In this document: positions 283-63,031 of the stretch, piece by piece
Numbering within the stretch: position 1 is the stretch's first letter
Layout of the letters: every line of letters starts with the position of its first letter
Sequence record: NC_070952.1
Direction: 5' to 3' (one strand)
Length of the DNA stretch: 64,000 bases
Position numbers and translations under genes: made by a program
The notes under the pieces: generated by a model
Database searches by the model: none
What the model saw: only the letters and a program-made list of their open reading frames with translations
What the model was told of the DNA's origin: nothing

Positions 283-310
283 CTACTCCCTACGATATCG
301 TAGGGAGTAG
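283..310. terminator. Perfect 28-bp palindrome at a convergent junction (YTAC hairpin family)
   Basis: CTACTCCCTACGAT|ATCGTAGGGAGTAG between stops at 260 (+) and 328 (-). Confidence 0.75.
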
Positions 311-327
311 CATTACTGTTTAATTTT

Positions 328-672
328 TTATTGTCGAACGGTACGTGTACTCTGAATCAGTAAATCAATTTGTTCGTAAGTAACTGTGTAGATACCTTTA
401 AGGTGAGAAAAATCTTGATTGGGGTTTTCAATTCCGTTGATAAAGGAAATCGTCCAAATTAATTCTTCTGGGATTGCAGTCATCCCGCTGGTACTGGTTC
501 GTAACTGGCGTAGGAATTTATGGAAGTTGTACCGGTATGCGTATTTAATACCGAGTTCTAAAAATGGAGTATATGAGGCGTTCTTAAGTAAGACCTCTTT
601 GCAAGATCGCACTATGACCTTGTATTCGTCGGTGTAGTAATAAGAATCACCGCCAGTATAAGGAAGGGGCAT
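328..672 (-). CDS. Hypothetical protein, weak LysM/T4 gp53-like baseplate wedge resemblance
   Basis: 114-aa ORF with GGAG SD; segment IPEELIWTISFINGIENP resembles the W-x-I-x-x-x-N-x-I-x-N-P pattern of LysM/gp53-like proteins (by eye only). Confidence 0.55.
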   Translation of the reverse strand: MPLPYTGGDSYYYTDEYKVIVRSCKEVLLKNASYTPFLELGIKYAYRYNFHKFLRQLRTSTSGMTAIPEELIWTISFINGIENPNQDFSHLKGIYTVTYEQIDLLIQSTRTVRQ

Positions 673-711
673 TCTGAATCTCCAATAATTTTCGCGCCAA
701 AGATAATCAAG

Positions 712-730
712 CAGATATTATCTTTATGTA
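712..730 (+). promoter_or_regulatory. Putative phage early/middle promoter motif
   Basis: CAGATATTATCTTTATGTA; related copies at 6007, 47402 and 54223, all intergenic and upstream of operon starts. Confidence 0.55.
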
Positions 731-753
731 TAATAAAAGAGGTGTCATGCAAC

Positions 754-2850
754 ATGGATAAGCACAATCAGATTAAACCGAATACGGCAGGTGTCGCTAT
801 CGGTATGAACACTAACAGAGCAACCAACTCTTCCTCACGCTTGTATATGCTCGGGAAGAACCAAGGTAAAGCGGCTGTTATCCACGGTACCACAAACCGT
901 AAGTATATTTCTGGTGATGAACAAGAGTATACGAAAGGCGCCCGTAAAGTAGAAACAGAGTCTGATGTAGAAGTTGAAGAGATTCTGTTTGTTCGAGATA
1001 TCGTTAATGAAAAGGAACCTACTCAGTGGGGTTCTCACTTCGTTATTGTAAAGGATCTCGAAACCGGACTTTACGACGTAATCGAATTGTCTAAGTTTCA
1101 CGCTCAAAATATGGATCTTGGCTTTGAGTTTAAATACGACAAAGACTTGCTCCGCTCGATTCATAAAGGTGCACGATTCCGTAAAGGGACGGTATTTGCA
1201 ACGTCTGCTCGTATCACCGAAAGTAATGAGTGGGTACCTGGTGCCGAAACCAAAGTAGCTGCAATGTCCCACGTTTATACCGAAGAGGATGCCGTTGTTA
1301 TCTTTGAGCATTATGCAAAGAAGATCGGCGTTACTTTCAAACGCAGTCATGACTTCCAGTGGAATGAGGATGAGTATATTCCGTTGAACCTTTATGGGAC
1401 AATCGATCATCCACAACCTTTCCCACTGTCTGGTGAAACTGTGCGTGCTGACGGTATCGTTATGGGTTTTCGTCGTAAGGATGCGGATTCAGCGATGGCC
1501 GGTCTTACCAAGAAAGCATTGATGGAACCGGATGACATTTATGATATCTTATTCCACAGCAGTGCTAACTGTGTGGTTGCCGATATTGAAGTTTCCACCG
1601 AGCGTTATAAAAACGTCTCGAACAACAAACGTGCTGAGAAACGCAGTCAACCCCATACGGCTATTCTGGAACGTATTGAAGAAGCGCAGAATGCTTTTGC
1701 TAACTCCGTTGTTAAATGGTTTAAGGAAAAGCAGAAAGTATATAAAGACAAGAAAGTTCCAATCTCTCGTGCACTGTGGAACTTGATCTGCTTTAACGGT
1801 ATGGGGGATATCACCCGTGACTTCAGTACACCGAACAGTCAGGGTCGTTATAACAAGGTTAAACGTAAAACCGGTAATATCCAATTGAAAGATTGGCGTA
1901 TCCGTATTCACCTTCGTGAAGATGTAGAAGGGAAAACGCGATTCAAGAACACCGGGATGGACGGTAACAAATCGATCATCATGAAGGTTCTGCCTTCACA
2001 CATGGCGCCGGTTGATGATCACGGTAACGTTGCTGATATGATCGTGGGTAACACCCCGGGTTATCGTCGTCAGATTTATAACTCATTCATCGAGCTTGAT
2101 GTTAACTTCGTGAACATTCATTTGTATCCGAAGATTGTCAAAGCGTACAATGAAAAGGATTATGATCTGGCTTGGAAGATCGCTTATGATTTCTATGAGA
2201 CGGTTTCTCCAGAACACGGTGCGATCATGGATACGTTTACCGATGAAATGCGAATGAACCATCTGAAGTGGATCATGGCAGATGAAAATGAGTTCGCGTC
2301 TCTGGGTAATAACACCGATGATATTCAAGGTGTGAAAATCGTTGAACGTATTGTTGACCGTTATCCTGAAATTCAACCAACTCCGGTAACCTTCGTTAAT
2401 GAATGGGGTGAAACCAAACGTACCCGTCACCCAATTGTGATCAGTAGTGTTTACTATATCATGTTGGATAAGTTCGGTGATGATATCTCTTGTCAGTCTA
2501 CCCCGAAACTGAATATCTTTGGTCTGCCAACCTCGTTGTCTAAGCACGAAAGAGCACGTAACTTTTATCGTGCTACGCTTAACCGAAATGTGGGCGAAAC
2601 CGAAGGACGTCTGTTCATTAATCAGAAAGGCGGTGGTGCTGCAACTCGAATGCTAGCTTGGGCAAACTCCGCTGAACTGCTGGAGATCTCAATTGAACGT
2701 TTGATCCGTGCAGAAAACCCGTTCCTGATTCCAGAACTGATCAAACCGGGTGAAGAGAAAAAGAACCACTCTCTTCAAGTGATCGACAATATGTTCTCTG
2801 ATTTTGGCTTAGTATTGAGGAAAGAGCGTGAAGACGATAAAACTGCGTGA
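754..2850 (+). CDS. Non-virion RNA polymerase beta subunit, C-terminal half (phiKZ gp71-73-like)
   Basis: KTRFKNTGMDGNKSII matches beta GDK-x-x-GRHGNKG; NRNVGETEGRLF matches RFGEME-x-x-AL; adjacent to a beta' fragment. ATG 754 chosen over GTG 742 because of SD AGAGGT. Confidence 0.9.
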   Translation: MDKHNQIKPNTAGVAIGMNTNRATNSSSRLYMLGKNQGKAAVIHGTTNRKYISGDEQEYTKGARKVETESDVEVEEILFVRDIVNEKEPTQWGSHFVIVKDLETGLYDVIELSKFHAQNMDLGFEFKYDKDLLRSIHKGARFRKGTVFATSARITESNEWVPGAETKVAAMSHVYTEEDAVVIFEHYAKKIGVTFKRSHDFQWNEDEYIPLNLYGTIDHPQPFPLSGETVRADGIVMGFRRKDADSAMAGLTKKALMEPDDIYDILFHSSANCVVADIEVSTERYKNVSNNKRAEKRSQPHTAILERIEEAQNAFANSVVKWFKEKQKVYKDKKVPISRALWNLICFNGMGDITRDFSTPNSQGRYNKVKRKTGNIQLKDWRIRIHLREDVEGKTRFKNTGMDGNKSIIMKVLPSHMAPVDDHGNVADMIVGNTPGYRRQIYNSFIELDVNFVNIHLYPKIVKAYNEKDYDLAWKIAYDFYETVSPEHGAIMDTFTDEMRMNHLKWIMADENEFASLGNNTDDIQGVKIVERIVDRYPEIQPTPVTFVNEWGETKRTRHPIVISSVYYIMLDKFGDDISCQSTPKLNIFGLPTSLSKHERARNFYRATLNRNVGETEGRLFINQKGGGAATRMLAWANSAELLEISIERLIRAENPFLIPELIKPGEEKKNHSLQVIDNMFSDFGLVLRKEREDDKTA

Positions 2851-4849
2851 GTTTGCAAATCTATCCTGTTTAGCAATGTTGCAGTTTACAGAGCGTCGAA
2901 TTAAGATCGAAGTTCTGGATGATGTCGGTGATAAACAAATTACCGATACCTGGATGCTGGGACTGAGTTGGTTCAGTCTGATTGTCCATCGTCATTATAA
3001 TGATGAACCGTATCACATTAATGAGCTGGCGCTGTTGAAAGAGAAAGACGGACGCCAATCCTTCATCGATGATGATACCCTGAAGAAACCAATCGATAAC
3101 TTCCTTGAGCGACTGATGCCCAAGTATGACGATCCGGTCTTCTATGATTTCATCAAACAACTTATCTTTACCTGGCATAACCAGTGTCATAACTATCTGG
3201 CGATCAAAGGCGAAACAGGTGTGGTCTCTGCGCGCGCAGTAGACATTGTACACATCTATCGAAACCCTAAGATCATGGATCTGCGAGAGCGTGTACACAG
3301 CCGTAAAACCAACATGGCCGATGCACACAAAGAGTTCGAACAGATTATGATGACAGAGAAAGACCTGGATAAGCTGGTCTTCACTTTGTTGTATCGTACT
3401 CGTTCGGTTAACTCAACGCAGTCTTTCCAGTTGATTGTATCGCGTGGAGACGTGTTCGATTTGAACAACGTTATTCTGCCGAATACCATCATGACCAGTT
3501 ATGCTGATGGCATTACCAATCTGGCAGATTCTCTGGGTGACTCCAAAGGTGCGGGCTTCTCTCTGATCAGTAACGGTTCAGCACTTCAGGATTCCGAGTG
3601 GTTCCATAAAAAGATCCACAACGTTTCTCAAGTCGTGCAAGGTATTCGTTATCAAACAGACTGTGGGTCTACGGTGGGTCCGGTATTGAAGATCATCAGT
3701 ACCGAGTTTAAGAAGTCGTTAGTGGGACGTTGGACGATTAATGATGATGGTACCAATACCTTACTGACTTATGAAGAAGTGAAGAAGTTGGAGACAGGGA
3801 ACTCTATCCGGATTCGTGACATCGCTTGGTGTCATCATGCTAAAGCCGGTAAACCTTGTTCCAGATGTTTCGGTAAGATGGAATCTGCTATTCCGTATAA
3901 TCCTTTTACACTGAAAGCAGGGGTTCCAGGTCTGTTCTATGGTTCCACGTTTGCTGAACCTATTGGTCAGTCAATCTTGAAAACCAAACACCGTATCGGG
4001 TCAGCAACTTCCGTCGGGTTTAAAGTAGAACGTGCCGATCTTCCGTATATCACTACCGATGAAACCGGTGACTTCATTTACTTCCATAAAGATATCCTGA
4101 ACGACGTCTCTGATCCATATATCATCTTGGATAAAGAAACGCAGCAGGACTTCTCTGACTTCCAATTCATGGACAGCCTGGATGATCTGGATGCTACTCG
4201 TTTTCGTACCTATGAAGCGATCAAACTTAAAGTCAGCATTGTTAACCCAATGTTCGATGATAAGAAAGCAACCTACTTCCCTGTACTGACCACCACCATT
4301 GCTTCTCGTGATGCCCGAATGACCAAAACGTTCATTCAGTATCTGCTGGGCAAACCGATGGAAGAAGAAGGTCGTAACTTTAAGATCTCGTTGAAAGACT
4401 ATGACTTTAAAGAACCGGCATTTGAACTTCCACAGGTGAACGAAGATTTGGATGCGTATCGTAAACGTGTTGAGAGTTTCCTGAAGTTCCCTCATGTTAA
4501 CCGTCGCTGGGATGTGAAAGTGACACCTGAAATTCATGGTGAAACAATGATCGCATTCTGGAAAGTGGTTGATGAGAAATATAAGGAAGCCAACATTGTT
4601 ATGCATTCTATTTTCTTGTGGGCATGTATGGCACGCGATCCTGAGAATCTGGACTTTGGTATTCCGGTTGGCGAAGAACCGCGTAACTTCATCAGTCTTC
4701 ATGACGCAGTGCTGAACCGTGGTCTGGGTAACACCTTACTGTATGGTTGGCAGGCAAGTGCGCTGTTGGGTCACCCAAATAACATGCGCATTAAAAACCG
4801 TCAAGGCGGTGCACTGGAAGCATTCATGCATCCAATCGCTCGCGATTAA
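2828..4849 (+). CDS. Non-virion RNA polymerase beta' subunit, C-terminal half (phiKZ gp74-like)
   Basis: Zn ligands DCGST...WCHHAKAGKPCSRCFG; trigger-loop-like FAEPIGQSILKTKH; overlaps the beta gene. Confidence 0.9.
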   Translation: MKTIKLREFANLSCLAMLQFTERRIKIEVLDDVGDKQITDTWMLGLSWFSLIVHRHYNDEPYHINELALLKEKDGRQSFIDDDTLKKPIDNFLERLMPKYDDPVFYDFIKQLIFTWHNQCHNYLAIKGETGVVSARAVDIVHIYRNPKIMDLRERVHSRKTNMADAHKEFEQIMMTEKDLDKLVFTLLYRTRSVNSTQSFQLIVSRGDVFDLNNVILPNTIMTSYADGITNLADSLGDSKGAGFSLISNGSALQDSEWFHKKIHNVSQVVQGIRYQTDCGSTVGPVLKIISTEFKKSLVGRWTINDDGTNTLLTYEEVKKLETGNSIRIRDIAWCHHAKAGKPCSRCFGKMESAIPYNPFTLKAGVPGLFYGSTFAEPIGQSILKTKHRIGSATSVGFKVERADLPYITTDETGDFIYFHKDILNDVSDPYIILDKETQQDFSDFQFMDSLDDLDATRFRTYEAIKLKVSIVNPMFDDKKATYFPVLTTTIASRDARMTKTFIQYLLGKPMEEEGRNFKISLKDYDFKEPAFELPQVNEDLDAYRKRVESFLKFPHVNRRWDVKVTPEIHGETMIAFWKVVDEKYKEANIVMHSIFLWACMARDPENLDFGIPVGEEPRNFISLHDAVLNRGLGNTLLYGWQASALLGHPNNMRIKNRQGGALEAFMHPIARD

Positions 4850-4855
4850 TTAACC

Positions 4856-4869
4856 GGACAAGGATGTCC
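4856..4869 (+). promoter_or_regulatory. Candidate CsrA/RsmA-binding hairpin
   Basis: GGACA-AGGA-TGTCC; contains ACAAGGAUGU versus CsrA consensus RUACARGGAUGU, with GGA in the loop, just upstream of the SD of ORF 4889. Confidence 0.45.
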
Positions 4870-4888
4870 ACTATTAGGGTACGTTATC

Positions 4889-5074
4889 GTGGAATACAAA
4901 TACGATGATTTATTACAGTCGATCCAAGAATCTCAGTGCAACATTAAGGGCAAATGGGTAGCGTGTCGTCCTAAAGGACCGCTGGGTTGGCCAGGCTTTA
5001 AAATCCGGGTACGTTCAGCCTGGCGAGTATTGACTGGCAAAGCCGATGCGTTCACGTGGCCAGGTGGTCAATAA
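4889..5074 (+). CDS. Small hypothetical phage protein
   Basis: 61 aa, GTG start with AGGG SD; W-x-x-x-RP...R-x-x-x-AW-x-VLTGKADA pattern; TAATG-coupled to the next gene. Confidence 0.7.
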   Translation: MEYKYDDLLQSIQESQCNIKGKWVACRPKGPLGWPGFKIRVRSAWRVLTGKADAFTWPGGQ

Positions 5075-5394
5075 TGCGAATCACTTCAACCCCAGGTGAA
5101 ATCCTGAAAGAAGAATACATGACGCCTTATAATCTCACTAACAATAAGTTAGCAGAGATGTTGGGTGTTAATGAAGGGACGTTGTCTCGACTGGTTAATG
5201 GTAAGGTTTCATTAAGCTCCGATATGGCTCTGCGTTTGGGTAAGGTGCTGGGTACCACACCGATGTTTTGGATTAACCTTCAATCGACTCATGATATCTC
5301 TGTTGCTAAAACCAATAAAGATCTTCAGGCGAGTATTGACAAGTTGGTTCCATTCTTTAAACGCTCGGTAACGGAAACTAGCGAAGATGCTTAA
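5074..5394 (+). CDS. higA: HigA/VapI-family XRE-HTH antitoxin-like protein
   Basis: TPGEILKEEYM...LAEMLGV...LSRLVNGK..LSSDMALRLGKVLGTTPMFWINLQ..HD is the HigA signature (HPGEIL-x-EE-F/Y...MALRL...FW-x-NLQ-x-x-YD); start overlaps the upstream TAA. Confidence 0.85.
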   Translation: MRITSTPGEILKEEYMTPYNLTNNKLAEMLGVNEGTLSRLVNGKVSLSSDMALRLGKVLGTTPMFWINLQSTHDISVAKTNKDLQASIDKLVPFFKRSVTETSEDA

Positions 5395-5632
5395 ATCGAT
5401 TCTTGAAATCCTTCCTGGTCAGCTGATTGAAATTAAATCCAAGGCCGGTGGGATCCAGCAGGCGCCATTTACCAAAACAGTTGCCACGGTAACCGAAGAC
5501 GGATTCACTGTCACGGATACTGACTACGCTGGTTATGTCTTTCCTTTAAGTATGGATAACTACCTCGGTACAATCGATGTAGCATCCATGGAAGGCAAAG
5601 AAAGTTGGACACTTCAGCAGTTCTCTCAATAA
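5387..5632 (+). CDS. Hypothetical protein
   Basis: 81-aa ORF overlapping the higA stop; followed by a hairpin. Confidence 0.65.
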   Translation: MLKSILEILPGQLIEIKSKAGGIQQAPFTKTVATVTEDGFTVTDTDYAGYVFPLSMDNYLGTIDVASMEGKESWTLQQFSQ

Positions 5633-5637
5633 ATCCT

Positions 5638-5665
5638 ATCCACTTCCTGTAAAAGGGAAGTGGGT
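5638..5665 (+). terminator. Putative terminator hairpin
   Basis: ATCCACTTCC-tgtaaaag-GGAAGTGGGT followed by ATTTGTTT. Confidence 0.5.
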
Positions 5666-5682
5666 ATTTGTTTGGAGCAGGT

Positions 5683-5982
5683 ATGAAAAGTAACATTGAT
5701 TTAAAGTTCTTTGATCAGTGTAAAAATTATTTTGTCTATCACCATAAAAATAACCTTCCTTTTACCCGAGGGTTTGGTGAAGGACGACCTTTGCGTTCAC
5801 AGAGTGAATATCTTGAATATCGTTATATTGATCTTAATGATGAAACTTTTGACGCGATAAAAGAAAAGGTAAAGACTCATCTGGAAAAAGAAGACCCTAA
5901 CCTCACTTATGGTGTTTTTCGAGTGAGCGTGGAAAAGTTAACTAAAGGGTATGAAATTAATGTAGGGTACTACTACATCTAA
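5683..5982 (+). CDS. Hypothetical protein
   Basis: ATG 5683 with GGAG SD; 99 aa. Confidence 0.65.
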   Translation: MKSNIDLKFFDQCKNYFVYHHKNNLPFTRGFGEGRPLRSQSEYLEYRYIDLNDETFDAIKEKVKTHLEKEDPNLTYGVFRVSVEKLTKGYEINVGYYYI

Positions 5983-6006
5983 ATCCCACAGTAATTTAAT
6001 TTCAAA

Positions 6007-6025
6007 CATATATCATTATCGTGTA
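6007..6025 (+). promoter_or_regulatory. Putative phage early promoter motif
   Basis: CATATATCATTATCGTGTA; 17/19 identical to the copy at 54223. Confidence 0.6.
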
Positions 6026-6047
6026 ACTAACCACACAGGTAATAACT

Positions 6048-7210: not shown

Positions 7211-7357
7211 TATCCAGTTCATCTAAATAACTAAAGGGAAAAGGATTTCCCATAAAAGGAATTAGCATTTAAAAGTACTCCGGTCCGAATCAGATAGTCA
7301 AGTATCCTTTGGACGCCCAATTCACTGGGTTTCAGTACATAAAGAGGTTTGCGTCAG

Positions 7358-8902
7358 ATGCGAAGAACGCTTGTGATTCACAAGGCGAATGCGTATGTTC
7401 GTCTGACTGACTTTAAACCTGAACTTGTAAAGCAAGTGCTTATTCCTTTTTGTAAGAAACACTTTTATCGAGTTCAGAAAACTCCCATACCCGGAGGCGG
7501 AGCTAATGCCTTCAAGTGGGAAGTCAGTCATGTATTCGCTCGGTTCAACACTGATAAAACCGAGCTAAGGTTCAATGTAGAGAAACTACCTGAACTGATT
7601 GAAATGATGCGCGCTAATGGATACGCTGAGAACAGGATCTTGATTACAGATGAACCTGTCATTGTCGGTACAAAAGCTAACATCAAGTTAAAGAACCCAG
7701 ATATCAAACCCCGTAATGAATTGCAGGAAGATTACATTGAGTTTATGACCGGACCTACTCCTGTTGTGGTAAACAACGCGACCACGGGTTTCGGTAAAAG
7801 CTTTATGGCAATCTACACTGCATACTTATTGGGACAGCGTACGTTGATTACCGTATTACCGCGTTATGTTGATATTTGGTTAAAGACAATCGCCGAGTTC
7901 TTGGATGTTCACCCTACTGACATTTTGGTTGTTGACAAACACACTGTCGAGGATGTTCATAAGGCAATGAAAGAAGGACTCATTAATCCTTCCTTTATTA
8001 TCTTGCCATTGACGAAGATCGATGTTTATCTGAAACGCATAAAGGAAGACCCCTCACTGCCTTGTCTGGACGATGTCTATCGAGATCTAGCATGTGGGTA
8101 CCGTATTATCGATGAGGCACACGAATCGATCTACTCGGTGTATATGTCATTGATGTTTGGCAATCACGCTAAGACAGCTGCTTTATCGGCAACGCTGCAA
8201 GGTGATGATGATTTCATCAATGGTATCTATAATCAGATCTTCCCGGCGAAGTCTTATCTCAGACCACCTGAGTACACGAAGTACATTCACGTTATTGCGT
8301 ACACGCATCGCATGGATGTCATGAAGTATCGAATTAACGCCAAAGGGTTTGGTGGGTATTCTCATGTGAAGTTTGAACAAGCGATCATGAAGAATAAATA
8401 TGTCTTTGAACAATACTACCTTATGTTGGCAGAAGCGTTTAAAGTCTATTACTTTGATACGTATCGTGATGGTCAAAAAGCCATGTGGTTCTTTGCGACG
8501 ATTGAGATGTGTGAAATGTTCCTGGAACGATTAAAGCTTGATCATCCTGATCTTGATGCAATTGTGTTCACTGGGGAACAGAGTAAGAAGAAGGAAACGA
8601 AGACCGCCTACCGTGAGCACCAGGTTGTTGTAACGACACCAGGCTCTTGTGGTACCGGTAAAGATATTCCTAAGCTCTACGTCGTGTTTAGCCCCATTGC
8701 TGTGAGTTCCTCACAACGTAATGACCAGATGGTTGGACGCACCCGTCCGATTGATAAGTGGTGGCCTGATTTAGATCCTATCTTTGTTTATTTCGTTTGT
8801 CCTGATATTCCAAAGCAGGTTGATTACCACCGCAAACGTAAAATAATCTTCGATAAGAAAATGAAGCAGTTTACATTGATCGACAGTGGTTCTCGTATTT
8901 AA
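7358..8902 (+). CDS. Superfamily 2 DEAH-box helicase (phiKZ gp75-like)
   Basis: Walker A ATTGFGKS, Walker B IIDEAHE, motif III LSAT, motif V GTGKDIP, motif VI QMVGR. Confidence 0.9.
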   Translation: MRRTLVIHKANAYVRLTDFKPELVKQVLIPFCKKHFYRVQKTPIPGGGANAFKWEVSHVFARFNTDKTELRFNVEKLPELIEMMRANGYAENRILITDEPVIVGTKANIKLKNPDIKPRNELQEDYIEFMTGPTPVVVNNATTGFGKSFMAIYTAYLLGQRTLITVLPRYVDIWLKTIAEFLDVHPTDILVVDKHTVEDVHKAMKEGLINPSFIILPLTKIDVYLKRIKEDPSLPCLDDVYRDLACGYRIIDEAHESIYSVYMSLMFGNHAKTAALSATLQGDDDFINGIYNQIFPAKSYLRPPEYTKYIHVIAYTHRMDVMKYRINAKGFGGYSHVKFEQAIMKNKYVFEQYYLMLAEAFKVYYFDTYRDGQKAMWFFATIEMCEMFLERLKLDHPDLDAIVFTGEQSKKKETKTAYREHQVVVTTPGSCGTGKDIPKLYVVFSPIAVSSSQRNDQMVGRTRPIDKWWPDLDPIFVYFVCPDIPKQVDYHRKRKIIFDKKMKQFTLIDSGSRI

Positions 8903-8909
8903 CGACTCG

Positions 8910-8936
8910 ACTCTAGGGACCTCGGTCCTTAGGGTT
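8910..8936 (+). terminator. Hairpin after the helicase gene
   Basis: CTAGGGAC-CTCG-GTCCTTAG core with one G-U pair, followed by a T-rich run. Confidence 0.4.
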
Positions 8937-8954
8937 CTTGTTTATGGCGGTTGT

Positions 8955-10304: not shown

Positions 10305-10336
10305 AACCTACCTTCCCATCTTGGGTAAGGTAGGTT
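10305..10336. terminator. YTAC-family hairpin
   Basis: AACCTACCTT-cccatcttgggt-AAGGTAGGTT then TTATTT. Confidence 0.7.
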
Positions 10337-10382: not shown

Positions 10383-10934
10383 ATGACCGTTATCGTTCAT
10401 GAAAATAAAAAGTTAAGTAGTCTTCCTACTTTAATGGAGACACAGGATATCATAAATGAGTTATCGATGGGTACAGATAAACTTTCCAAAGAGGAGTTTA
10501 TTCGGATTGCTTTAGAGAAATACCCTAAGTTCGATGCCTGGTCTCCGCTGGTCTATTATCGGACTGATGGTACTGTCTTAGAAACCGATCTTATTCTTGT
10601 GTCTCTACGTGGCGCTATTGCATACAAAATGGGTGGCGATCTTCACATCAACTATGGTGATCTGGAAAGTGGTTCTCCACAGGTCTCGGTCAACATCTTG
10701 GGTGATCAACATACACTGCAACTGGGTCGCGCTGTAGCGTCTACCTTCTTAACCGTGCCTGACATCTATAAGGGTATCAAAGAAGCAGATCTACAGGTTA
10801 TCCATTTGGACGGTCAATCTCATCAGTGTCATATCCTGAACCTGGAATGGAAACTGAACAAACCTGAAGCGGATACCGATCTGGTTGAGAAAACCGTAAA
10901 GGTACTTAACGCCGATCTTCCAACCGAAGAGTAA
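10383..10934 (+). CDS. NUMOD4/HNH-like protein with degenerate active site
   Basis: AWSPL...LILVSLRGAI resembles NUMOD4 (W-x-P...Y-x-VS-x-x-G-x-V); GRAVASTFLTVP...QVIHLDGQSHQCHILNLEW resembles HRLVA-x-AF-x-PNP...V-x-HIDG-x-x-x-NN-x-x-x-NLEW; AAGGAG SD. Confidence 0.65.
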   Translation: MTVIVHENKKLSSLPTLMETQDIINELSMGTDKLSKEEFIRIALEKYPKFDAWSPLVYYRTDGTVLETDLILVSLRGAIAYKMGGDLHINYGDLESGSPQVSVNILGDQHTLQLGRAVASTFLTVPDIYKGIKEADLQVIHLDGQSHQCHILNLEWKLNKPEADTDLVEKTVKVLNADLPTEE

Positions 10935-10936
10935 CT

Positions 10937-10974
10937 AACTCCCTACCCCTCCGTTAGGAAGGGTAGGGGTTATG
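10937..10974. terminator. YTAC-family hairpin at a convergent junction
   Basis: AACTCCCTACCCCTCC-GTTA-GGAAGGGTAGGGGTT directly followed by ATG (TATG) and then TCTTTTATTTTT. Confidence 0.7.
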
Positions 10975-16567: not shown

Positions 16568-16597
16568 CCTACCTTATCCTTCACGGGATAAGGTAGG
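16568..16597. terminator. YTAC-family hairpin
   Basis: CCTACCTTATCC-TTCACG-GGATAAGGTAGG; TATG and a long T-run about 8-25 nt downstream. Confidence 0.7.
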
Positions 16598-16636
16598 ATG
16601 GTTTGTATGTTATTTTTTTTTTATTGGAGAGAAGAA

Positions 16637-17104
16637 ATGACCGTCAAAAAGAACTATGTAAACCCAACTATCGCTGAATCCTCTTTCAGGGAATTGTTGA
16701 AAGATCAGCCATTTGGAATCAAGAAAAACCCGATTGTCCGTACATTAAGGGATATCGCGCATCACAGTTTCAACGGTGAAAACATTTTCGAGCATAAGTA
16801 CATTGACGGGAACAAGAAAACAAAACTTGTTCACCAGGTTACGATTAACCGTGAAAATGGACACGCTTATAGTCAGCATGAATTCCACGATGAATATAAC
16901 CTTAAGCTCCCAGGGATCGTTATCCCGTTGAACTGTAAAAGCAACCCTACCATACAGAAAGGAAGATTGGTGCTGGTAGGACCGATTACAGGACCAATGA
17001 ATGTCGAAATACAGTTCTACTTTAAAGGTTCAAAAGAATGGGGAAGTATTCCAGTAGGTCCTTCTAATGTTTTGACTATATTAACCAATATTCTTCAAGG
17101 ATAA
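16637..17104 (+). CDS. Hypothetical accessory protein
   Basis: ATG 16637 after a GGAG SD; 155 aa. Confidence 0.65.
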   Translation: MTVKKNYVNPTIAESSFRELLKDQPFGIKKNPIVRTLRDIAHHSFNGENIFEHKYIDGNKKTKLVHQVTINRENGHAYSQHEFHDEYNLKLPGIVIPLNCKSNPTIQKGRLVLVGPITGPMNVEIQFYFKGSKEWGSIPVGPSNVLTILTNILQG

Positions 17105-17838: not shown

Positions 17839-17876
17839 CATAATCTCCTACTTACCCTTGGGTAAGTAGGAGTATG
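17839..17876. terminator. YTAC-family hairpin with CATA/TATG flanks, convergent junction
   Basis: CATA-at-CTCCTACTTACCC-tt-GGGTAAGTAGGAG-TATG. Confidence 0.75.
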
Positions 17877-23750: not shown

Positions 23751-23793
23751 CATAATTCCTCTACCCCTCCGAAAGGAAGGGTAGAGGGTTATG
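23751..23793. terminator. YTAC-family hairpin with CATA/TATG flanks, convergent junction
   Basis: CATAatt-CCTCTACCCCTCC-gaaa-GGAAGGGTAGAGG-gtTATG. Confidence 0.75.
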
Positions 23794-33872: not shown

Positions 33873-33906
33873 AGGAACAAGGGGCTTCGGCTCCTTGTTC
33901 CTTTTT
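33873..33906 (+). terminator. Canonical rho-independent terminator
   Basis: AGGAACAAGGGGC-TTCG-GCTCCTTGTTCCT directly followed by TTTT. Confidence 0.9.
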
Positions 33907-37903: not shown

Positions 37904-37936
37904 CCTCTTACTCCTTAATCGGAGTAAGAGGGTATG
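37904..37936. terminator. YTAC-family hairpin followed by TATG
   Basis: CCTCTTACTCC-ttaatc-GGAGTAAGAGG-gTATG. Confidence 0.7.
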
Positions 37937-42837: not shown

Positions 42838-42876
42838 GACCTACCTCTACTCCTTCACGGAGTAGAGGTAGTTATG
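42833..42876. terminator. YTAC-family hairpin with CATA/TATG flanks, convergent junction
   Basis: CATAagac-CTACCTCTACTCC-ttcac-GGAGTAGAGGTAG-tTATG. Confidence 0.75.
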
Positions 42877-47289: not shown

Positions 47290-47326
47290 TAGAACATCTT
47301 TCTGGTAAGTAAGAAATAAGCAGAAG

Positions 47327-47358
47327 CTCCCTTCCCTGGCTGAGGCTGGGGAAGGGGG
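47327..47358 (+). terminator. Terminator hairpin after the major capsid gene
   Basis: CTCCCTTCCC-tggc-tgag-gctg-GGGAAGGGGG then TCTTTGTT. Confidence 0.7.
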
Positions 47359-47400
47359 TCTTTGTTGTCTATTGGAAATTACAGTCTAAAACATTTTTAG

Positions 47401-47420
47401 GCAGATATTATCTAGTTGAG
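47401..47420 (+). promoter_or_regulatory. Putative promoter of the second nvRNAP operon
   Basis: GCAGATATTATCT identical to 711-723. Confidence 0.55.
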
Positions 47421-52670: not shown

Positions 52671-52698
52671 GAGAACCTACCTTAACGGGTAGGTTCTC
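52671..52698. terminator. YTAC-family hairpin
   Basis: GAGAACCTACC-ttaacg-GGTAGGTTCTC then TTTGCTT. Confidence 0.7.
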
Positions 52699-53251: not shown

Positions 53252-53261
53252 GGATAAATAA

Positions 53262-54241: not shown

Positions 54242-54301
54242 TAAACAATAAGTATTAATCTCTAATGCTTAAACTCATCCTAAACTTAGTAAGGAAATAC
54301 C

Positions 54302-54847: not shown

Positions 54848-54853
54848 GTAATT

Positions 54854-54881
54854 CCCTACTCTCCCAATTGGGAGAGTAGGG
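54854..54881. terminator. Perfect 28-bp palindrome (YTAC family), convergent junction
   Basis: CCCTACTCTCCCAA|TTGGGAGAGTAGGG; long T-run about 11-24 nt downstream. Confidence 0.8.
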
Positions 54882-54906
54882 TTTCACTGTGTTTATTTTT
54901 TTTTTA

Positions 54907-57774: not shown

Positions 57775-57802
57775 TGACAGGATTCTCCTTACAGGAACCT
57801 TT

Positions 57803-59947
57803 ATGCTTAATAATACCGAGTTTAATGCTTACATACTGAATACGATAGCGTTCGCTCGAACGATTACCATAAAGTGTGAAGCACTCGCCATATTAGATAA
57901 TCAGCTTCTTAAACAGTACTACAACATTGATGCGGGTACCGATAAGAACAAGTGGAAGTATTATCTCAATCTTTATGGCGAATACCATCAAGTCATTGAT
58001 GAGATGATGACAGTCCAGTCGTTAGATAACGGTGAAGTGATTAATTTCACGAAAGCTAACCTGGATATTCATACCGCAACAAAACGTGCTTATCGATTGG
58101 GATCCTATTATTACACGCGATTGGTCGCGGCATACCCTGCCCAGTTAATTCTGATCAACGGTATTCTCAACCCCATATCGCCTACAGAATCGATCCCAGC
58201 AAATGATTACCAGATCCTGAGATATAATACTGACTATGTATTATGGAATGAATACCAATTAATTCCCGCTCTCCAGGAACAGATCTATGCTAATGTTAAC
58301 GGATCATTTAAGACCGAGTATGTTTATATTGATAACCTCATGTTGCCGGCATTGCTTGCACAGCTTTATGGGATGATGATCAGTGCGATCTTAATGATTC
58401 GTAAAGAAGCAGACGGCACCCGTTATGCGCATGATTTTTACATCTGGAGTCGCCTGCGTTCTCTTGGGTTATCCGATGTGTATAAAAGGGTAATCAATAA
58501 CAACCAGACGATGTGGTTATACCACAACCTTGAATACGTACTGCGTATCTTGGGACGTCGTAAAGGGTTTGATCTGGTTCTTCAGAAAGTACTGACTGAC
58601 CGCAATATCCCGTTGATCCGTTATGAAGTTATTCAGTCCACTGAAGATATGACGGATACCCTGGAACCTAAGCCTTATGTGTTAAGTCGCCCGATTAACT
58701 TAACCGAGACTTACGGGGTGGATACCAAAGTCTGGACGGTATCTGAAGTCATTGCGAAAGAACTTCCTTTGGCACTGGATAACGAACAAGCCTCGGCATT
58801 GACCACGTCAGATGCAGAAGCAGCGATCAAGTATTCATTACACTCTGATGTTCCAACCAAAGTGCTTGAATCCAATCTGACCGATACCACTGACCGTGAC
58901 CCTGATCGGATTATGCGGGTTCTACATAATGAATGGATTTATTTAACTTCCCAGGGTGTGTACAATATTAATGTAGACGTAGTGGATGCCCGCACCGGTA
59001 AAACAACGCGCATGAGTACGCCTGAAAGCGTGATACTCTGGCATTACCTTATCGACCGTGCACGCGGTATCTCTCGTCCCGGAACAATCCCGGAATACAA
59101 TTATTGGCATGTCCGTAAATTGGTTGATCCAACCTTGGCAGAACTTCAGTCATTGGGGGGTTATGAAATCCTGACTAAAGAAGTGTGTGAAAACATTTTG
59201 AAAGTCCATGTGGATTTCCCTACCTTAATCTCTCCCGATACGTTCTTCCAAAAATGTCAAGAAGTTCAAACTGCGATGTGGAAACACAAGAAGTTATATT
59301 CGCAGGTGAATAACTTGTTCATCTCATCCCGTCGTCAAAATGCCGTTGACGCGTGTTATGCAAATGGCATGGTAAAGGTAGGTAACTACGCGACGTACGA
59401 TGATTTTCTGACTAAGATGGATATCGACTTTATTGACTATACCCCAGACGAGTGTTTAGATTACGCATGGTCTATCTGGAGTAAAGTAACCGGGTGGGAA
59501 GATAACAGTATCGTCAGTGTGGGAGAACAACAACGTCTCCTGATTAACCTGATGAAAGATCTCACCAGTTACACGGTGCAATATATCGGTAGTACCGTCA
59601 CCGCAGAGGGTCAATTCAATTTACCGTACATGATGTTGATGGACGGCGATTACTGGCACAAGAACGGCGAGACTGGGTTAGAGTATACAAGCGCTGAGTT
59701 TCTTCCTAATGCAATGACAGTGAAGCCGCAGGCTGATCTTGAAGCAAAAGAACTAACCTTTGCTATTGGTGGGTCGGTCCCTATTCAGTCTGTTGCTGAA
59801 TCCGTCGGCCATGCCAGACTCAGTAACGCAATGACACTCAAACCGATTGACTATGATCCGGGCGTCAATAACGTTTATTTGTTTAACAGTATGACATTGA
59901 AAGAAGTTGTTGATAATGGCGAAGTGGAGAACACCCTCCCTCACTAA
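57803..59947 (+). CDS. Conserved virion protein, possible baseplate wedge
   Basis: 714 aa from ATG 57803 (AGGA SD); YYLNLYGEYH; RRKGFDLVL resembles the KG-T helix of gp7/gpI-like wedges (inference). Confidence 0.65.
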   Translation: MLNNTEFNAYILNTIAFARTITIKCEALAILDNQLLKQYYNIDAGTDKNKWKYYLNLYGEYHQVIDEMMTVQSLDNGEVINFTKANLDIHTATKRAYRLGSYYYTRLVAAYPAQLILINGILNPISPTESIPANDYQILRYNTDYVLWNEYQLIPALQEQIYANVNGSFKTEYVYIDNLMLPALLAQLYGMMISAILMIRKEADGTRYAHDFYIWSRLRSLGLSDVYKRVINNNQTMWLYHNLEYVLRILGRRKGFDLVLQKVLTDRNIPLIRYEVIQSTEDMTDTLEPKPYVLSRPINLTETYGVDTKVWTVSEVIAKELPLALDNEQASALTTSDAEAAIKYSLHSDVPTKVLESNLTDTTDRDPDRIMRVLHNEWIYLTSQGVYNINVDVVDARTGKTTRMSTPESVILWHYLIDRARGISRPGTIPEYNYWHVRKLVDPTLAELQSLGGYEILTKEVCENILKVHVDFPTLISPDTFFQKCQEVQTAMWKHKKLYSQVNNLFISSRRQNAVDACYANGMVKVGNYATYDDFLTKMDIDFIDYTPDECLDYAWSIWSKVTGWEDNSIVSVGEQQRLLINLMKDLTSYTVQYIGSTVTAEGQFNLPYMMLMDGDYWHKNGETGLEYTSAEFLPNAMTVKPQADLEAKELTFAIGGSVPIQSVAESVGHARLSNAMTLKPIDYDPGVNNVYLFNSMTLKEVVDNGEVENTLPH

Positions 59948-60173
59948 GAAGAATTTGACATTCATTACGAAGCACAGTCTCAAGACGTCTATAGAAGATA
60001 TTCGACCTTCGGATGTTGTGAGACTTGTTCGTTCTTTTATCGGTGTCGAACTCTATTCCACTGACATTGAATCGATTAGACTGGTCCCCGGAGGATACCT
60101 TATTCGTATCCGTCCGGACAGTCCGATTTATTGCGGTAAGTTTAAAATTAAATATCGTAAGTATATTAATTAA
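59916..60173 (+). CDS. Small probable virion protein (start uncertain: ATG 59916 or TTG 59955)
   Basis: RSFIGVELYSTDI...YLIRIRPDSPIYCGKFKI module like 35020. Confidence 0.55.
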   Translation: MAKWRTPSLTKKNLTFITKHSLKTSIEDIRPSDVVRLVRSFIGVELYSTDIESIRLVPGGYLIRIRPDSPIYCGKFKIKYRKYIN

Positions 60174-60179
60174 GGAAAT

Positions 60180-61115
60180 ATGATGGCTGATTCATCTACA
60201 GGCCGCGATAGTCAGAAGCTCCCTAACCAGTTAGTGTCTGCCACTGGTATGGGTCTGATTATTAACGCTGCTTTGTCTTGCAACCAAACTGTTAATATTC
60301 CAAAGAACACCACGCTGAATGAGAAGTTTAGCATTCTGGCTGATGAATCAGTGGGTCGTAAAAACGGCCGTGATTTCCAACTGGGTTACTTTGGTGTAGG
60401 TATCGGTGGTTCCCGTTCTATCGGTCAAGACAGTTATGGTTTAGAAGGCCGTCAAGTCTATCAGCATAAAGCCGTAGACTTTGCGCCGTTCTATGGTATC
60501 CCAATGGTTGCCCGTAAACTGGGTAGTGACCTGGATCCAACTGTTCGTGATAATTACCGTATTCGTGAAGTGCGCAAAATCGGCGACGATATCTACATCC
60601 TTTACTGGTTGAAGAAAGCGGGCTTTACTGAATTTGATCCAACCATGAAAGTGGGTGAGCGTGATCCATCCACCGGTAATGAAACAGAACGTGAATACGT
60701 TCCAAAAGAAGCTGATCTGAGCCCAACGCCATATCAGTTAACGTCAACCAACAACGTTCCAATTACCGACACCTATATTAACGGTACCGGTAAAATCGAT
60801 CTGTCTCTGGACAGTAACGACCTGGAAGAACTGCGTAATGTTTGCCGTATCTTGTTTAACGATGAAGGTAAGGCAGCAATCAACGAAGTTTACATGTGTT
60901 ATGGAATTGAAACGACCAATAGCGGTCAGGTTGATTCTGGCGCGTCTGTAAACTACAAAGAGCTGGTTTCTTGTGTAGTGAGTTATCAGATCACTGAAGC
61001 GTATGCACGCGATGCTAACGCCAACAACAAGATGCCGTGGTTCTTCTGGTACGGTAACTCGATTCCGCTTCTGGTTGGTGCAGATGCTTTAGCAGCTGCT
61101 AATACCGGTAGCTAA
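60180..61115 (+). CDS. Conserved virion/baseplate protein
   Basis: 311 aa, AAGGA SD; LGYFGVGIGG motif; synteny. Confidence 0.7.
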   Translation: MMADSSTGRDSQKLPNQLVSATGMGLIINAALSCNQTVNIPKNTTLNEKFSILADESVGRKNGRDFQLGYFGVGIGGSRSIGQDSYGLEGRQVYQHKAVDFAPFYGIPMVARKLGSDLDPTVRDNYRIREVRKIGDDIYILYWLKKAGFTEFDPTMKVGERDPSTGNETEREYVPKEADLSPTPYQLTSTNNVPITDTYINGTGKIDLSLDSNDLEELRNVCRILFNDEGKAAINEVYMCYGIETTNSGQVDSGASVNYKELVSCVVSYQITEAYARDANANNKMPWFFWYGNSIPLLVGADALAAANTGS

Positions 61116-61132
61116 TAAGGAAGGGACTTATT

Positions 61133-61756
61133 ATGGCCGATGTTGATAAGTCCCAACCTGAATCCCCTTTGGATATTACTCTGAGCAAATGGTCAACCGT
61201 CAAGGCTATTATCAGTACGATAAATGATAAATACGGGTTGACGCTCGATCTGAATAAGTACGAAGATCGTTTAGCATATGTGAACAGTGATGGTGTATTG
61301 GCACTCGATATTGTCGATACCAACTCAGGGGAATTAGCTTGGGCCGTGATAGATTCACAAAGCGGTAAAGTGGGCTCGTCGATCAATGAAGTGATTGATC
61401 ACCCGAAAGCATTTGGTTTCAGTAATGTTATCCAGAACTTTGGGGTAGTAGTAAACAGCGAGAAGGAACTTGAGTTCTTAAAGGACGTGCGCTTAGACGT
61501 GCGTTATGACTCAGGAATGACTGGCGGCGACAAGTCATTTAAATTGATGACATTGTTGAACAATTATACTGTTGGGGACGGGTTTACCTCGAATCCAAGT
61601 CAAGGATGCACAACGGCGTATTTCGTGCTCAGATACTTCGGTAAGGGTAGCGAGGCGCCGGGCGTTTATAACTTCAATCCTGAGGCTAAATGTTTAGTCG
61701 TGGTGGAGTTAATGATGTATGGAGAGTATCAACTCCATGCACTTGTTGTGAGATAA
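61133..61756 (+). CDS. Probable virion protein
   Basis: IISTINDKYGLTL motif typical of phiKZ-like tail-associated modules. Confidence 0.65.
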   Translation: MADVDKSQPESPLDITLSKWSTVKAIISTINDKYGLTLDLNKYEDRLAYVNSDGVLALDIVDTNSGELAWAVIDSQSGKVGSSINEVIDHPKAFGFSNVIQNFGVVVNSEKELEFLKDVRLDVRYDSGMTGGDKSFKLMTLLNNYTVGDGFTSNPSQGCTTAYFVLRYFGKGSEAPGVYNFNPEAKCLVVVELMMYGEYQLHALVVR

Positions 61757-61760
61757 AATT

Positions 61761-62336
61761 ATGAGCGTTAAAATCTTAGGGATAGATCCGGCAACTGGCC
61801 AGCTTGGTGCGGCCGCTTTGGAATTGGATTGTTACGAACGTAAGAAGTTCAAACTGATTTATGCAGACACATTAAACGGTGAGCATAATGAGTTTGGGGT
61901 TCGTGCTGACAATCCATCCCAAACCCGTGCTAAAGGACTGACACGCGCTTACGGTCATGTGTTTGATATGATCGATCCCGTAGTAGTGGGATGCGAGGAT
62001 AACTTCTTAGGGCCTAACCCAGCCAGTTTCAAACGTCTGATCGAAGTGGTGTCTTATTTAAACATCTATACGGTGACTAATAAAGCAGACACCCCTTTTA
62101 AATTAGTGCTTCCCCGTTTAGCTAAACGAATTGTTAAGGCTGATTTTACAGGGGCGACTAAAGATGACGTACGAGAAGGGTTGAAGAAATGTCCTTTCCT
62201 GGATCTGAATGGGTTTGATTTAGATACTCTTACCTGGGATGCAAATGACGGAATCCTCATTGCGTTGTATATTGCAGTGCAATATTACAAAGATTTAGGT
62301 TGGGACGTGTTCGATGGCACCTGCCTTAAAAGTTAG
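61761..62336 (+). CDS. ruvC: RuvC-like Holliday junction resolvase
   Basis: ILGIDPATGQLG (D), VGCEDNF (E), ATKDDVREG, DANDGILIA (D..D). Confidence 0.85.
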   Translation: MSVKILGIDPATGQLGAAALELDCYERKKFKLIYADTLNGEHNEFGVRADNPSQTRAKGLTRAYGHVFDMIDPVVVGCEDNFLGPNPASFKRLIEVVSYLNIYTVTNKADTPFKLVLPRLAKRIVKADFTGATKDDVREGLKKCPFLDLNGFDLDTLTWDANDGILIALYIAVQYYKDLGWDVFDGTCLKS

Positions 62337-62988
62337 AACCAAATACGAAGTTAAACCTTGGGATCGTATACCGGTTGTACTCCGGGCGCTCTCTGGGTTT
62401 AACTCGTGCTTAACAGTGTCCGTAATGAGTGTCGTCTTTATCTGGTCTGTGCATTTAAGTGTAACGACCGGTAAAGCCACATGGCCTGAGTTCATGACCG
62501 GTTTGTTAATGATCATCGGACCTATCATTATTACGATCAACTTTGTTAATGCAAAATCTATTATTTCAACTATCGTGGGTGTGACCGATGAAGTAGAAGG
62601 ACGACCAATAGGTGACAGTACGGTAATACCGACTCAACCCTCTGTTATGGTGGCGTCTGCTACGGGAATTGTTTCACAACACGACATTGCCTTTGAGCGT
62701 GAAATCGTTGGACCAACAACAGTTCTACTAAGGGCCATTGCTGGTACAGTCTCCACGCATGTTATTTGTTTTTGCAGTTTGTTGTTTACCTGGACCATTC
62801 ACGATTCAATGATTGCTGGTAATTCCCTTCCTGGCGATGCCCAGTTGTTTATGGTGGTGATTGGACCGATTATAACATCTTGGAATTTTGTTCGTGCTAA
62901 CGCGACATTAAACGCGGTTATCAAAGGAACCAGTGCAATTAACGTATGGCGAGACCGACTTGCAAACATGTTATCAACACAGAAATAA
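62314..62988 (+). CDS. Membrane protein with two repeated TM hairpins; holin candidate
   Basis: About 4 hydrophobic segments; internal repeat ending IGPII...NFV; adjacent to spanin genes; start uncertain. Confidence 0.6.
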   Translation: MAPALKVRTKYEVKPWDRIPVVLRALSGFNSCLTVSVMSVVFIWSVHLSVTTGKATWPEFMTGLLMIIGPIIITINFVNAKSIISTIVGVTDEVEGRPIGDSTVIPTQPSVMVASATGIVSQHDIAFEREIVGPTTVLLRAIAGTVSTHVICFCSLLFTWTIHDSMIAGNSLPGDAQLFMVVIGPIITSWNFVRANATLNAVIKGTSAINVWRDRLANMLSTQK

Positions 62989-62989
62989 A

Positions 62990-63031
62990 CATACTACTCT
63001 ACCTCCCACAACGGGAGGTAGAGTATATATG
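62990..63031. terminator. YTAC-family hairpin with CATA/TATG flanks, convergent junction
   Basis: CATAc-TACTCTACCTCCC-acaac-GGGAGGTAGAGTA-taTATG, then a T-run. Confidence 0.75.

Follow-up and report, generated by a model that had tools for sequence, protein, structure and literature searches.

Intergenic YTAC/GTAR hairpins of Erwinia phage AH04 as probable transcription terminators of the phiKZ/201phi2-1 class

Identification of the hairpins and the phage

The DNA analyzed here, a stretch of 64,000 nucleotides (nt) from record NC_070952.1 (the window), is 100% identical to positions 62001-126000 of the genome of Erwinia phage AH04 (MZ501267 / NC_070952, 262,639 bp, genus Meadowvirus) and carries a family of intergenic hairpins in which YTAC of the 5' arm pairs with GTAR of the 3' arm (Y, pyrimidine; R, purine). 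These hairpins are likely factor-independent, intrinsic-type transcription terminators of the class mapped in phages phiKZ and 201phi2-1, in a variant belonging to the AH04 clade, and most of them would be used in both directions because they are placed between convergent genes. As such they would be a lineage-specific version of terminators already described, rather than an element of an unprecedented kind. The existence of the hairpins, their location and statistics, their conservation with compensatory change and their similarity to the mapped class were observed directly. Coordinates are window positions unless marked as genome coordinates (window position + 62,000), and the remaining AH04 genome was also retrieved for genome-wide testing of the family.

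AH04 is a phiKZ-like, nucleus-forming jumbo phage (chimallivirus), as its record annotates a nuclear shell protein, a PhuZ tubulin and several phage RNA polymerase (RNAP) subunit genes. It has its own virion and non-virion RNAP genes, some subunits being encoded within the window, and sequence comparison showed homology to OBP, Sureiya and 201phi2-1. Phages of the phiKZ type are transcribed by non-canonical phage multisubunit RNAPs inside the phage nucleus (PMC4666361, PMC10612078).

Hairpin scan and sequence statistics

The original prediction, made from the letters of the window, had listed 11 sequence-related hairpins, and all 11 are present where it placed them, with stems of 11-15 bp, loops of 4-6 nt and folding energies (dG) of -18 to -24 kcal/mol. 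The pyrimidine-rich 5' arm described for them was found in 10 (pyrimidine fraction 0.75-0.92) but not at 52671, where the arm is not pyrimidine-rich though CTAC/GTAG is present. Two members are indeed perfect 28-bp palindromes with self-complementary loops (283-310, loop ATAT; 54854-81, loop AATT), and the sequence CCTTCACGG recurs at both 16568 and 42841. Three related elements were absent from that listing: a decayed member (5637), an R-type hairpin (8909) and a very strong hairpin with a C-rich stem (47326-47359).

Strong hairpins were also sought systematically, requiring 9 or more stem bp with no more than 1 mismatch and a dG of -14 or lower. The window gave 13, as against 1.2 +/- 0.9 in 30 dinucleotide shuffles, and the whole AH04 genome gave 66, of which about 30 show the pairing of 5' YTAC with 3' GTAR. 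Within 27 pyrimidine-rich arms, 33 of the 42 internal A residues stand in a TAC context, compared with 7.9 +/- 2.5 when each arm was shuffled and a highest count of 18 in 5000 arm shuffles; the TAC bias is therefore not compositional. Pyrimidine-rich 5' arms outnumber purine-rich ones genome-wide (24 versus 9), and the strong hairpins, which cover 0.7% of the genome, hold 11-12% of all its CCTAC/GTAGG pentamers. By the TAC and pentamer counts, the YTAC bias exceeds chance, and the proposal that the stems share sequence beyond the needs of pairing is borne out by the TAC context statistics together with the near-invariant C-U-A-C columns and the slower YTAC substitution in orthologs described below. 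CCTAC/GTAGG as a word reserved or avoided throughout the genome was considered and rejected (observed/expected ratio [O/E] ~1 outside hairpins), so that any reader must recognize the CTAC core in a helical context. Reserve stop codons, or the keeping out of start codons, were weighed by reasoning as an account of GTAG/GTAA in the purine arm and not adopted. Self-complementary tetraloops are in excess among the strong intergenic hairpins of AH04 (10 of 34, six of them ATAT, with 9% expected; p=8e-4), and many of the putative terminators are therefore perfect palindromes. Relatives show a weaker excess, with 6 of 45 (p=0.08).

A search of the window against Rfam 15 gave no match at or above gathering score, and no earlier account of CTAC hairpins in OBP-like phages or AH04 was found in the literature searched.

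Position of the hairpins relative to genes

Sixty-one of the 66 strong hairpins of the AH04 genome are intergenic, nearly all of them 0-30 nt past a stop codon. Seven of the 11 hairpins first listed lie between convergent genes and account for all seven convergent junctions of the window. Genome-wide, a YTAC hairpin is present at 16 of 18 internal convergent junctions, the other two having a hairpin without TAC, versus about 11 of about 257 tandem junctions (Fisher 6e-17), and the family is enriched at convergent sites also when only strong intergenic hairpins are compared (9e-6). As in canonical terminators, the hairpins are stable, GC-rich and located at gene 3' ends (dG -18 to -33 kcal/mol). 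The variable, non-homologous positions, target duplications and clusters that would mark mobile palindromes (repetitive extragenic palindromic [REP]-like or miniature inverted-repeat transposable element [MITE]-like) were not found; each junction has one copy, with its position kept in six relatives, and a single pair of identical modules was found in AH04. A covariance-model scan of AH04 detected no family copies inside genes.

Covariance model, clade distribution and compensatory change

Alignment of all 14 tetraloop members with MAFFT shifted the register to align the TACs, and the seed was rebuilt from 7 same-register members, giving a covariance model of seven AH04 hairpins. Scanning the genome and its relatives with this model, as the original prediction had proposed, recovered 28 AH04 loci, all intergenic and including 10 of the 11 listed hairpins, while relatives from the OBP/Sureiya/AH04 clade gave 125 strand-hits. 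No other phage that was scanned had the 12-13 bp CTAC/GTAG variant. An exact-pattern scan of IMG/VR with CCTACYCYYCC-N3-6-GGRRGRGTAGG gave 30 matches, all on both strands, versus about 1.5 expected by a rough estimate; 19 of the 30 fall in six genomes of the same clade, and several of the rest, which also have TTATG in their flanks, come from large contigs (46 to 229 kb) that differ in GC content.

In a model-based alignment of 52 strand-hits, 97.9% of cells are paired and 126 double-sided changes occur; none of 500 shuffles reached the pairing or double-change values, and slid controls gave 45-58% pairing. Four columns, C-U-A-C, are nearly invariant, and their neighbors flip between C-G and U-A with the pyrimidine always on the 5' side. 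Because this alignment leans toward the covariance model, positional orthologs located via the upstream protein in five related metagenomic genomes, OBP and Sureiya were compared as well. Over 44 ortholog comparisons the TAC core was changed in 4% of cells versus 19.6% at other stem positions (Fisher 3.6e-6), where the changes were mostly compensatory, with 39 compensatory double changes, bearing in mind that the sequences are related and that the choice of offset favors aligning TACs. On these comparisons, the CTAC/GTAG core is apparently under extra sequence constraint in the OBP/Sureiya/AH04 clade. Its candidate readers are the RNAP exit channel or an RNA-binding factor, and shared descent with gene conversion could by itself account for the conservation.

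Exchange between elements is suggested by several near-identities. Two unrelated convergent junctions, at genome positions 193,640-193,700 and 226,835-226,895, have the same terminator module (AACAAACATAT, stem, GCTATGACTTATTT...; about 60 nt). Its copies differ only in 3 of 4 loop bases, and the TTA + T6-10 motif described below is part of the copied module. Identical stems also occur at the AH04 genome pairs 28699/36202 and 8722/198865, and the OBP ortholog of the 62995 element is near-identical to the non-orthologous AH04 sequence at 23758. These cases suggest copying or gene conversion between terminators.

Flanking sequences and tail

The family had been set apart from a textbook terminator at 33873 by a U-tract displaced from the stem. 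Pure T-runs do start 9-12 nt past the stem at 283, 10937, 16568, 54854 and 62995, but the stem-adjacent tail is itself U-rich, its first 8 nt being 51% U (genome T, 28%) in a tract interrupted by A, G and C. The contrast with 33873 was thus overstated, as a U-rich TTATG tail adjoins the stem just like the tails of mapped phiKZ-type terminators, and little is left of the unusual U-tract geometry. Among tetramers within 12 nt of the stem in 78 sense tails, TATG shows the highest enrichment (35 versus 2.7 expected, 13-fold), TTAT occurs there 42 times versus 5.5 expected, and G follows TAT in 56% of cases in tails versus 18% genome-wide. At convergent junctions TATG is found on both strands, the + strand reading ...CATAA-(stem-loop-stem)-TTATG....

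An outer A-U helix that would bring the distant T-run next to an extended stem was considered and is not supported beyond the A-rich/U-rich composition, since shuffled flanks contribute as much folding energy as the real ones (-4.5 and -4.2 kcal/mol; z ~0).

Comparison with mapped terminators and other known elements

In phiKZ, Oxford Nanopore Technologies (ONT)-cappable-seq mapped 133 terminators, of which 61 have the common motif 5'-BCCYCCCCHWWDGGGRRGGBYTTATKYYGT-3', that is, a pyrimidine-rich arm and a purine-rich arm followed by TTAT (Putzeys et al. 2024, PMC10914365). In 201phi2-1, 132 termination sites were mapped, 59 of them with a motif A that 'strongly resembles' the phiKZ motif, and pairs of motifs A and B give a longer hairpin; eight of these terminators were validated in vivo and are active in uninfected Pseudomonas chlororaphis (Poppeliers et al. 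2024, PMC11512511), and therefore work with host RNAP. A conserved-sequence terminator class, of which the original prediction took no account, is thus already published for both phages.

Seven of the eight coordinates printed for the transcription termination sites (TTS) of the validated terminators were placed on the 201phi2-1 sequence. At six of the seven a GC-rich hairpin is followed by TTTATG or ATATG, and at the seventh by TTTATAC; the mapped 3' end lies 7-8 nt past the stem in all seven, often with ACATA upstream. Hairpin scans of 50 kb of phiKZ and of 201phi2-1 gave the same flanks around CCCTCCC/GGGAGGG-type stems without TAC.

With the phiKZ terminators, the AH04 elements share arms rich in C/T (5') and in G/A (3'), a short loop, TTAT(G/T) immediately past the stem, ACATA-type upstream flanks, a gene-end location and, for some, bidirectionality, as well as the virus family and transcription system (a chimallivirus genome with its own virion and non-virion RNAPs). 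They differ in having stems of 12-13 bp rather than about 8 bp, a CTAC/GTAG core and only rarely UUCG loops. Motifs A and A/B of 201phi2-1 likewise consist of a hairpin and an adjoining TTTATG(Y). The helix is elongated by CATA on the upstream side and TATG on the downstream side, in agreement with the longer hairpin published for motifs A+B, whereas their stems are GC-rich, 7-10 bp long and without TAC, and the 201phi2-1 terminators are experimentally validated while the AH04 elements are predictions. Two AH04 hairpins are positional matches of validated 201phi2-1 terminators: that at genome position 140604, beside a baseplate gene, corresponds to TTS 179,552 (gene homology E = 2e-22), and that at window position 47326, past the major head gene, corresponds to the validated TTS 132,419 (E = 1e-15).

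Canonical bacterial bidirectional intrinsic terminators consist of an A-tract, a GC hairpin and a U-tract, with the 3' end 7-9 nt past the stem. The AH04 elements resemble them as palindromic hairpins between convergent genes with an A-rich leader and a U-rich trailer, and differ in that the proximal tract is UUAUG(Y)UU instead of a U run and in that the stems share sequence. Enterobacterial palindromes of the REP/bacterial interspersed mosaic element (BIME) type are also dispersed, sequence-related and intergenic, and can stabilize or terminate transcripts. The AH04 palindromes share the dispersal, relatedness and intergenic location, but are single copies fixed at gene ends, with position conserved in relatives and directional U-rich tails, and AH04 gave no sign of their transposition.

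Proposed mechanism

The predicted module comprises an A-rich leader (often ...AACATAA), a stem of 12-13 bp, a loop of mostly 4 nt and a U-rich tail usually starting (T)TATG(Y)TT; the 5' arm of the stem is C/T with a CTAC (sometimes TTAC) core, and the 3' arm is G/A with GTAG or GTAA. By analogy with the mapped 201phi2-1 terminators, a stable RNA hairpin would form in the nascent transcript, and the RNA would be released 7-9 nt past the stem on a weak UUAUG(Y) hybrid. Multisubunit RNAPs have a general pause consensus of a pyrimidine at -1 and G at +1, and a pause at the U/G step would probably precede release. That AH04 transcripts terminate here, where their 3' ends fall and which polymerase is involved we infer from analysis, and the polymerase during infection would be the phage's own multisubunit RNAPs. 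One element would stop both converging transcripts, because it is a near-perfect palindrome with TTATG on both strands. The functional level is probably RNA rather than DNA, given the strict gene-end placement, the directional U-rich tails and the G.U pairs, which form in RNA only, of unidirectional members, the hairpin of the major head gene at 47326 being the clearest case. For the same reasons (gene-3'-end placement, U-rich sense tails and the G.U pairs after the major head gene) the cruciform-based processing raised in the original prediction is unsupported.

Several observations weigh against this assignment. With up to 3 mismatches allowed, the literal 30-nt phiKZ consensus finds 4 sites in 50 kb of phiKZ and none in the window, and the AH04 covariance model has no hits in 111 kb of phiKZ and 201phi2-1, so that the link to the phiKZ class rests on architecture and tail and not on alignable sequence. 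TATG is frequent and not universal, being present in only about 45% of sense tails, and a second motif, TTA + T6-10, lies 9-18 nt past the stem, almost exclusively on the + strand (16 versus 1). Orthologs and paralogs do not provide phylogenetically independent counts, and part of the covariation and of the CTAC conservation could be an effect of gene conversion among terminators. The elements of the AH04 clade are known here from sequence, and it is in phiKZ and 201phi2-1 that transcript ends have been mapped.

The TTA + T6-10 motif is seen in the window at 16612-16624, 54892-54904 and 63039-63050, and 23 of 39 runs of T6 or longer on the + strand are intergenic. Candidate roles for it are a second stop site, a 5' untranslated region element or a signal for the other polymerase.

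Alternative explanations

The conserved core raises the question of whether it is itself the signal. The stem-loop, and specifically its CUAC/GUAG core, might be a binding site for a phage RNA-binding protein, with termination secondary or assisted; the protein could act in 3'-end protection, in mRNA export from the phage nucleus or as a termination/antitermination factor. We regard this as unlikely, although it is compatible with the terminator reading and does not exclude it. YTAC changes in about 4% of ortholog cells versus about 20% at other stem positions, the C-U-A-C columns are nearly invariant while neighboring pairs flip freely, CCTAC...GTAGG with TTATG recurs in further large viral contigs that differ in GC content, and CCTAC is not special outside hairpins, so reading would need the helical context. 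Yet there is no candidate protein for the core, the TAC register varies, some stems have two TACs, functional-looking members have no TAC (genome 209999; window 47326 and 5637), the phiKZ and 201phi2-1 terminators terminate without the core, and gene conversion among copies could explain the conservation. The original prediction had proposed a sequence-specific signal for a phage RNAP, and the phage does encode its own RNAPs and share stem sequence among its elements, but dependence on these RNAPs is unsupported and the 201phi2-1 equivalents work with host RNAP. We consider it doubtful that the non-canonical RNAP of the phage, or a dedicated factor, reads the CUAC/GUAG core and the TATG tail in a sequence-specific manner. 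In one version of this reading, the pocket of a beta-like subunit that binds non-template TATG at promoters would re-engage TATG during elongation, producing a pause at which the hairpin terminates. A single recognition module would then serve both start and stop signals, while the stem core would set the polymerase or the stage of infection at which the terminator is obeyed.

The core of the phiKZ non-virion RNAP (nvRNAP) late promoter is 5'-TATG-3' (Yakunina et al. 2015, PMC4666361; structure PMC12809450), the same tetramer as the most enriched word beside AH04 stems, although the promoter core is a start and not a stop signal and needs no hairpin at P119L. A functional link between the tail TATG and the promoter core is a hypothesis only. 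A terminator-promoter composite, in which the TATG past the stem is an nvRNAP start site or is re-recognized on the non-template strand by elongating nvRNAP, which then pauses, would fit the 13-fold enrichment of TATG on both strands and the tendency of tandem-junction terminators with a TATG tail to lie 36-134 nt before the next gene. We give it little chance of being correct: outward starts at convergent junctions would yield only antisense RNA against the neighbors, the mapped event beside TTTATG is a 3' end in the seven 201phi2-1 cases, the phiKZ P119L region has no upstream hairpin, and the distance from YTAC to the G of TATG is mostly -25 to -29, as against about -24 for TTACC of the phiKZ middle promoter. 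A related reading of YTAC as a phiKZ-like middle-promoter element (AAanTTACc at ~-24) combined with the tail TATG was rejected as the principal explanation, because of these distances and because the arrangement is senseless at convergent junctions.

It is very improbable that the hairpins are DNA-level elements, such as dispersed REP- or MITE-like palindromic repeats, recombination or replication sites or cruciform nuclease targets, that are intergenic by chance. Such an origin would agree with the identical ~60-nt module at genome positions 193.65 and 226.85 kb, with the OBP hairpin that nearly matches a non-orthologous AH04 hairpin, with the excess of self-complementary tetraloops and resulting perfect palindromes, and with AH04 proteins annotated as SbcD-like and as a DNA-repair ATPase. 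It is contradicted by the presence of always exactly one copy right after the stop codon, by a location that relatives share even as the sequence itself drifts, with compensatory changes, by the U-rich sense tails and RNA-only G.U pairs of unidirectional members, and by the lack of terminal repeats, target duplications or copies inside genes. Equally hard to sustain is the view that these are ordinary terminators whose resemblance is an effect of composition, with no sequence-specific constraint. Terminator stems are generally GC-rich, and the A-rich/U-rich flanks pair no better than shuffled ones, but composition does not account for the TAC context, the excess of pyrimidine-rich 5' arms, the YTAC conservation in orthologs (p=3.6e-6) or the TATG enrichment.

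Significance

To our knowledge, what exists on termination by phiKZ-like non-canonical RNAPs is 3'-end maps and a sequence logo, from phiKZ and 201phi2-1. The main interest of the AH04 elements is as an experimental handle on how the two non-canonical multisubunit RNAPs of a jumbo phage stop. They amount to a natural experiment in which the same TTATG tail is combined with a different, sequence-constrained stem, and many orthologs show which positions covary. The covariance model can be used to annotate where terminators lie and operons end in OBP-like phages, and the elements could serve in engineering as compact terminators acting in both directions. Were the tail functionally the nvRNAP promoter core, a new link between initiation and termination would follow; if not, an ordinary, useful annotation is gained.

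Individual elements in the window

The family hairpins at the seven convergent junctions, which are not assigned to one strand, begin with the perfect 28-bp palindrome CTACTCCCTACG-atat-CGTAGGGAGTAG (283..310) between gene 76 (+) and gene 77 (-), which has a + strand T-run 12 nt downstream and OBP orthologs with compensatory changes. At 10941..10968, CCCTACCCCTCC-gtta-GGAAGGGTAGGG followed by GTTATG separates gene 91 (+) from gene 92 (-), annotated as RNAP beta'; its + RNA contains a C.A mismatch and its - RNA a G.U pair, and it gave the top covariance-model score (55.8 bits). The hairpin CTCCTACTTACC-cttg-GGTAAGTAGGAG (17845..17872), with CATAAT upstream and TATG downstream, lies between gene 99 (+) and the DNA polymerase gene 100 (-), and TTAC/GTAA has become TCAC/GTGA in its ortholog in two relatives, a compensatory change. 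Between genes 104 (+) and 105 (-), CCTCTACCCCTCC-gaaa-GGAAGGGTAGAGG (23758..23787) stands between CATAATT and GTTATGC; YTAC is kept in all five of its orthologs, which show compensatory changes, for example CTAC/GTAG to TTAC/GTAA. The element (AC)CTACCTCTACTCC-ttcac-GGAGTAGAGGTAG(TT) with an ATG tail (42839..42873) lies between gene 121 (+) and the DnaB-like helicase gene 122 (-). The second perfect palindrome, CCCTACTCTCCC-aatt-GGGAGAGTAGGG (54854..54881), between genes 130 (+) and 131 (-), has CATAAGTAATT upstream and TTA then T10 starting 10 nt downstream. The last, TACTCTACCTCCC-acaac-GGGAGGTAGAGTA (62995..63025), between genes 137 (+) and 138 (-), is preceded by CATAC and followed by TATATG and a T-run.

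Four + strand family hairpins occupy tandem junctions. The first, AACCTACCTTCCC...GGTAAGGTAGGTT (10305..10336), with CATAA upstream, separates gene 90 from the HNH endonuclease gene 91. At the junction of genes 97 and 98, CCTACCTTATCC-ttcacg-GGATAAGGTAGG (16568..16597) has the tail ATGGTTTGTATG followed by T10, and CCTCTTACTCC-ttaatc-GGAGTAAGAGG (37904..37931), followed by GTATG, lies between genes 117 and 118. The hairpin GAGAACCTACC-ttaacg-GGTAGGTTCTC (52671..52698), between genes 127 and 128, is a marginal member; the covariance model did not find it at E<=1, and its stem is replaced in most relatives.

Among the elements added to the original list, the decayed member TATCCACTTCC-tgtaaaag-GGAAGTGGGTA (5637..5666, + strand), 3' of gene 82, reads TACCTACTTCC/GGAAGTAGGTA in relatives A and B, where CTAC is kept. 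The R-type hairpin at 8909..8936 follows the helicase gene 87. The C-rich hairpin without TAC at 47326..47359 (+ strand), 3' of the major head gene 124 and with the tail TCTTTGTTGT, is the strongest in the window (-33 kcal/mol for the fold of 47318-47372, about 15 pairs including G.U); it resembles the phiKZ consensus and was not recovered by the perfect-match hairpin scan. Outside the family, 33873..33902 (+ strand) is a conventional terminator, AGGAACAAGGGGC-ttcg-GCTCCTTGTTCCT then TTTTGCTG, with a G-rich 5' arm. The same junction in relative D and Sureiya reads AGAGTAGGAGCC-ttcg-GGCTCCTACTCT then TTATG, which is the family duplex with its arms exchanged.

Neighboring genes and other observations

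The HNH endonuclease gene 91 (10383-10934) is flanked on both sides by family hairpins, and OBP likewise has the order hairpin-HNH-hairpin, while relative D has a single hairpin at this locus; the arrangement is consistent with insertion of a homing gene beside a terminator. There is overlap between terminator tails or hairpins and the annotated starts of gene 98 (16598) and gene 88 (8886). Gene 98 more plausibly starts at an in-frame ATG at 16637, which follows GGAGAG, and the annotated 5' end of gene 88 includes the 8909-8936 hairpin. The superfamily 2 helicase encoded by gene 87 (7358-8902) was considered as a termination factor after the annotation of its ortholog in Serratia phage Sureiya as 'transcript termination protein', and this was rejected; searches with gene 87 gave weak Pfam matches to DEAD, ResIII and Helicase_C and the PHROG 'DNA helicase' family only, leaving a termination-factor role without support.

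In the AH04 genome as a whole, TATG is mildly (O/E 0.78) and CTAG strongly (O/E 0.46) under-represented. An AT-rich motif, TTTTnAGGCnnATATTAT(n)AGTG, recurs upstream of AH04 genes, for example as TTTTTAGGCAGATATTATCTAGTTG before gene 125 (window 47393-47420), with further copies at genome positions ~8.78, 11.87, 47.9, 164.2, 188.7, 224.6 and 247.4 kb, and seems to correspond in AH04 to the AT-rich early promoters that phiKZ-like phages have for their virion RNAP.

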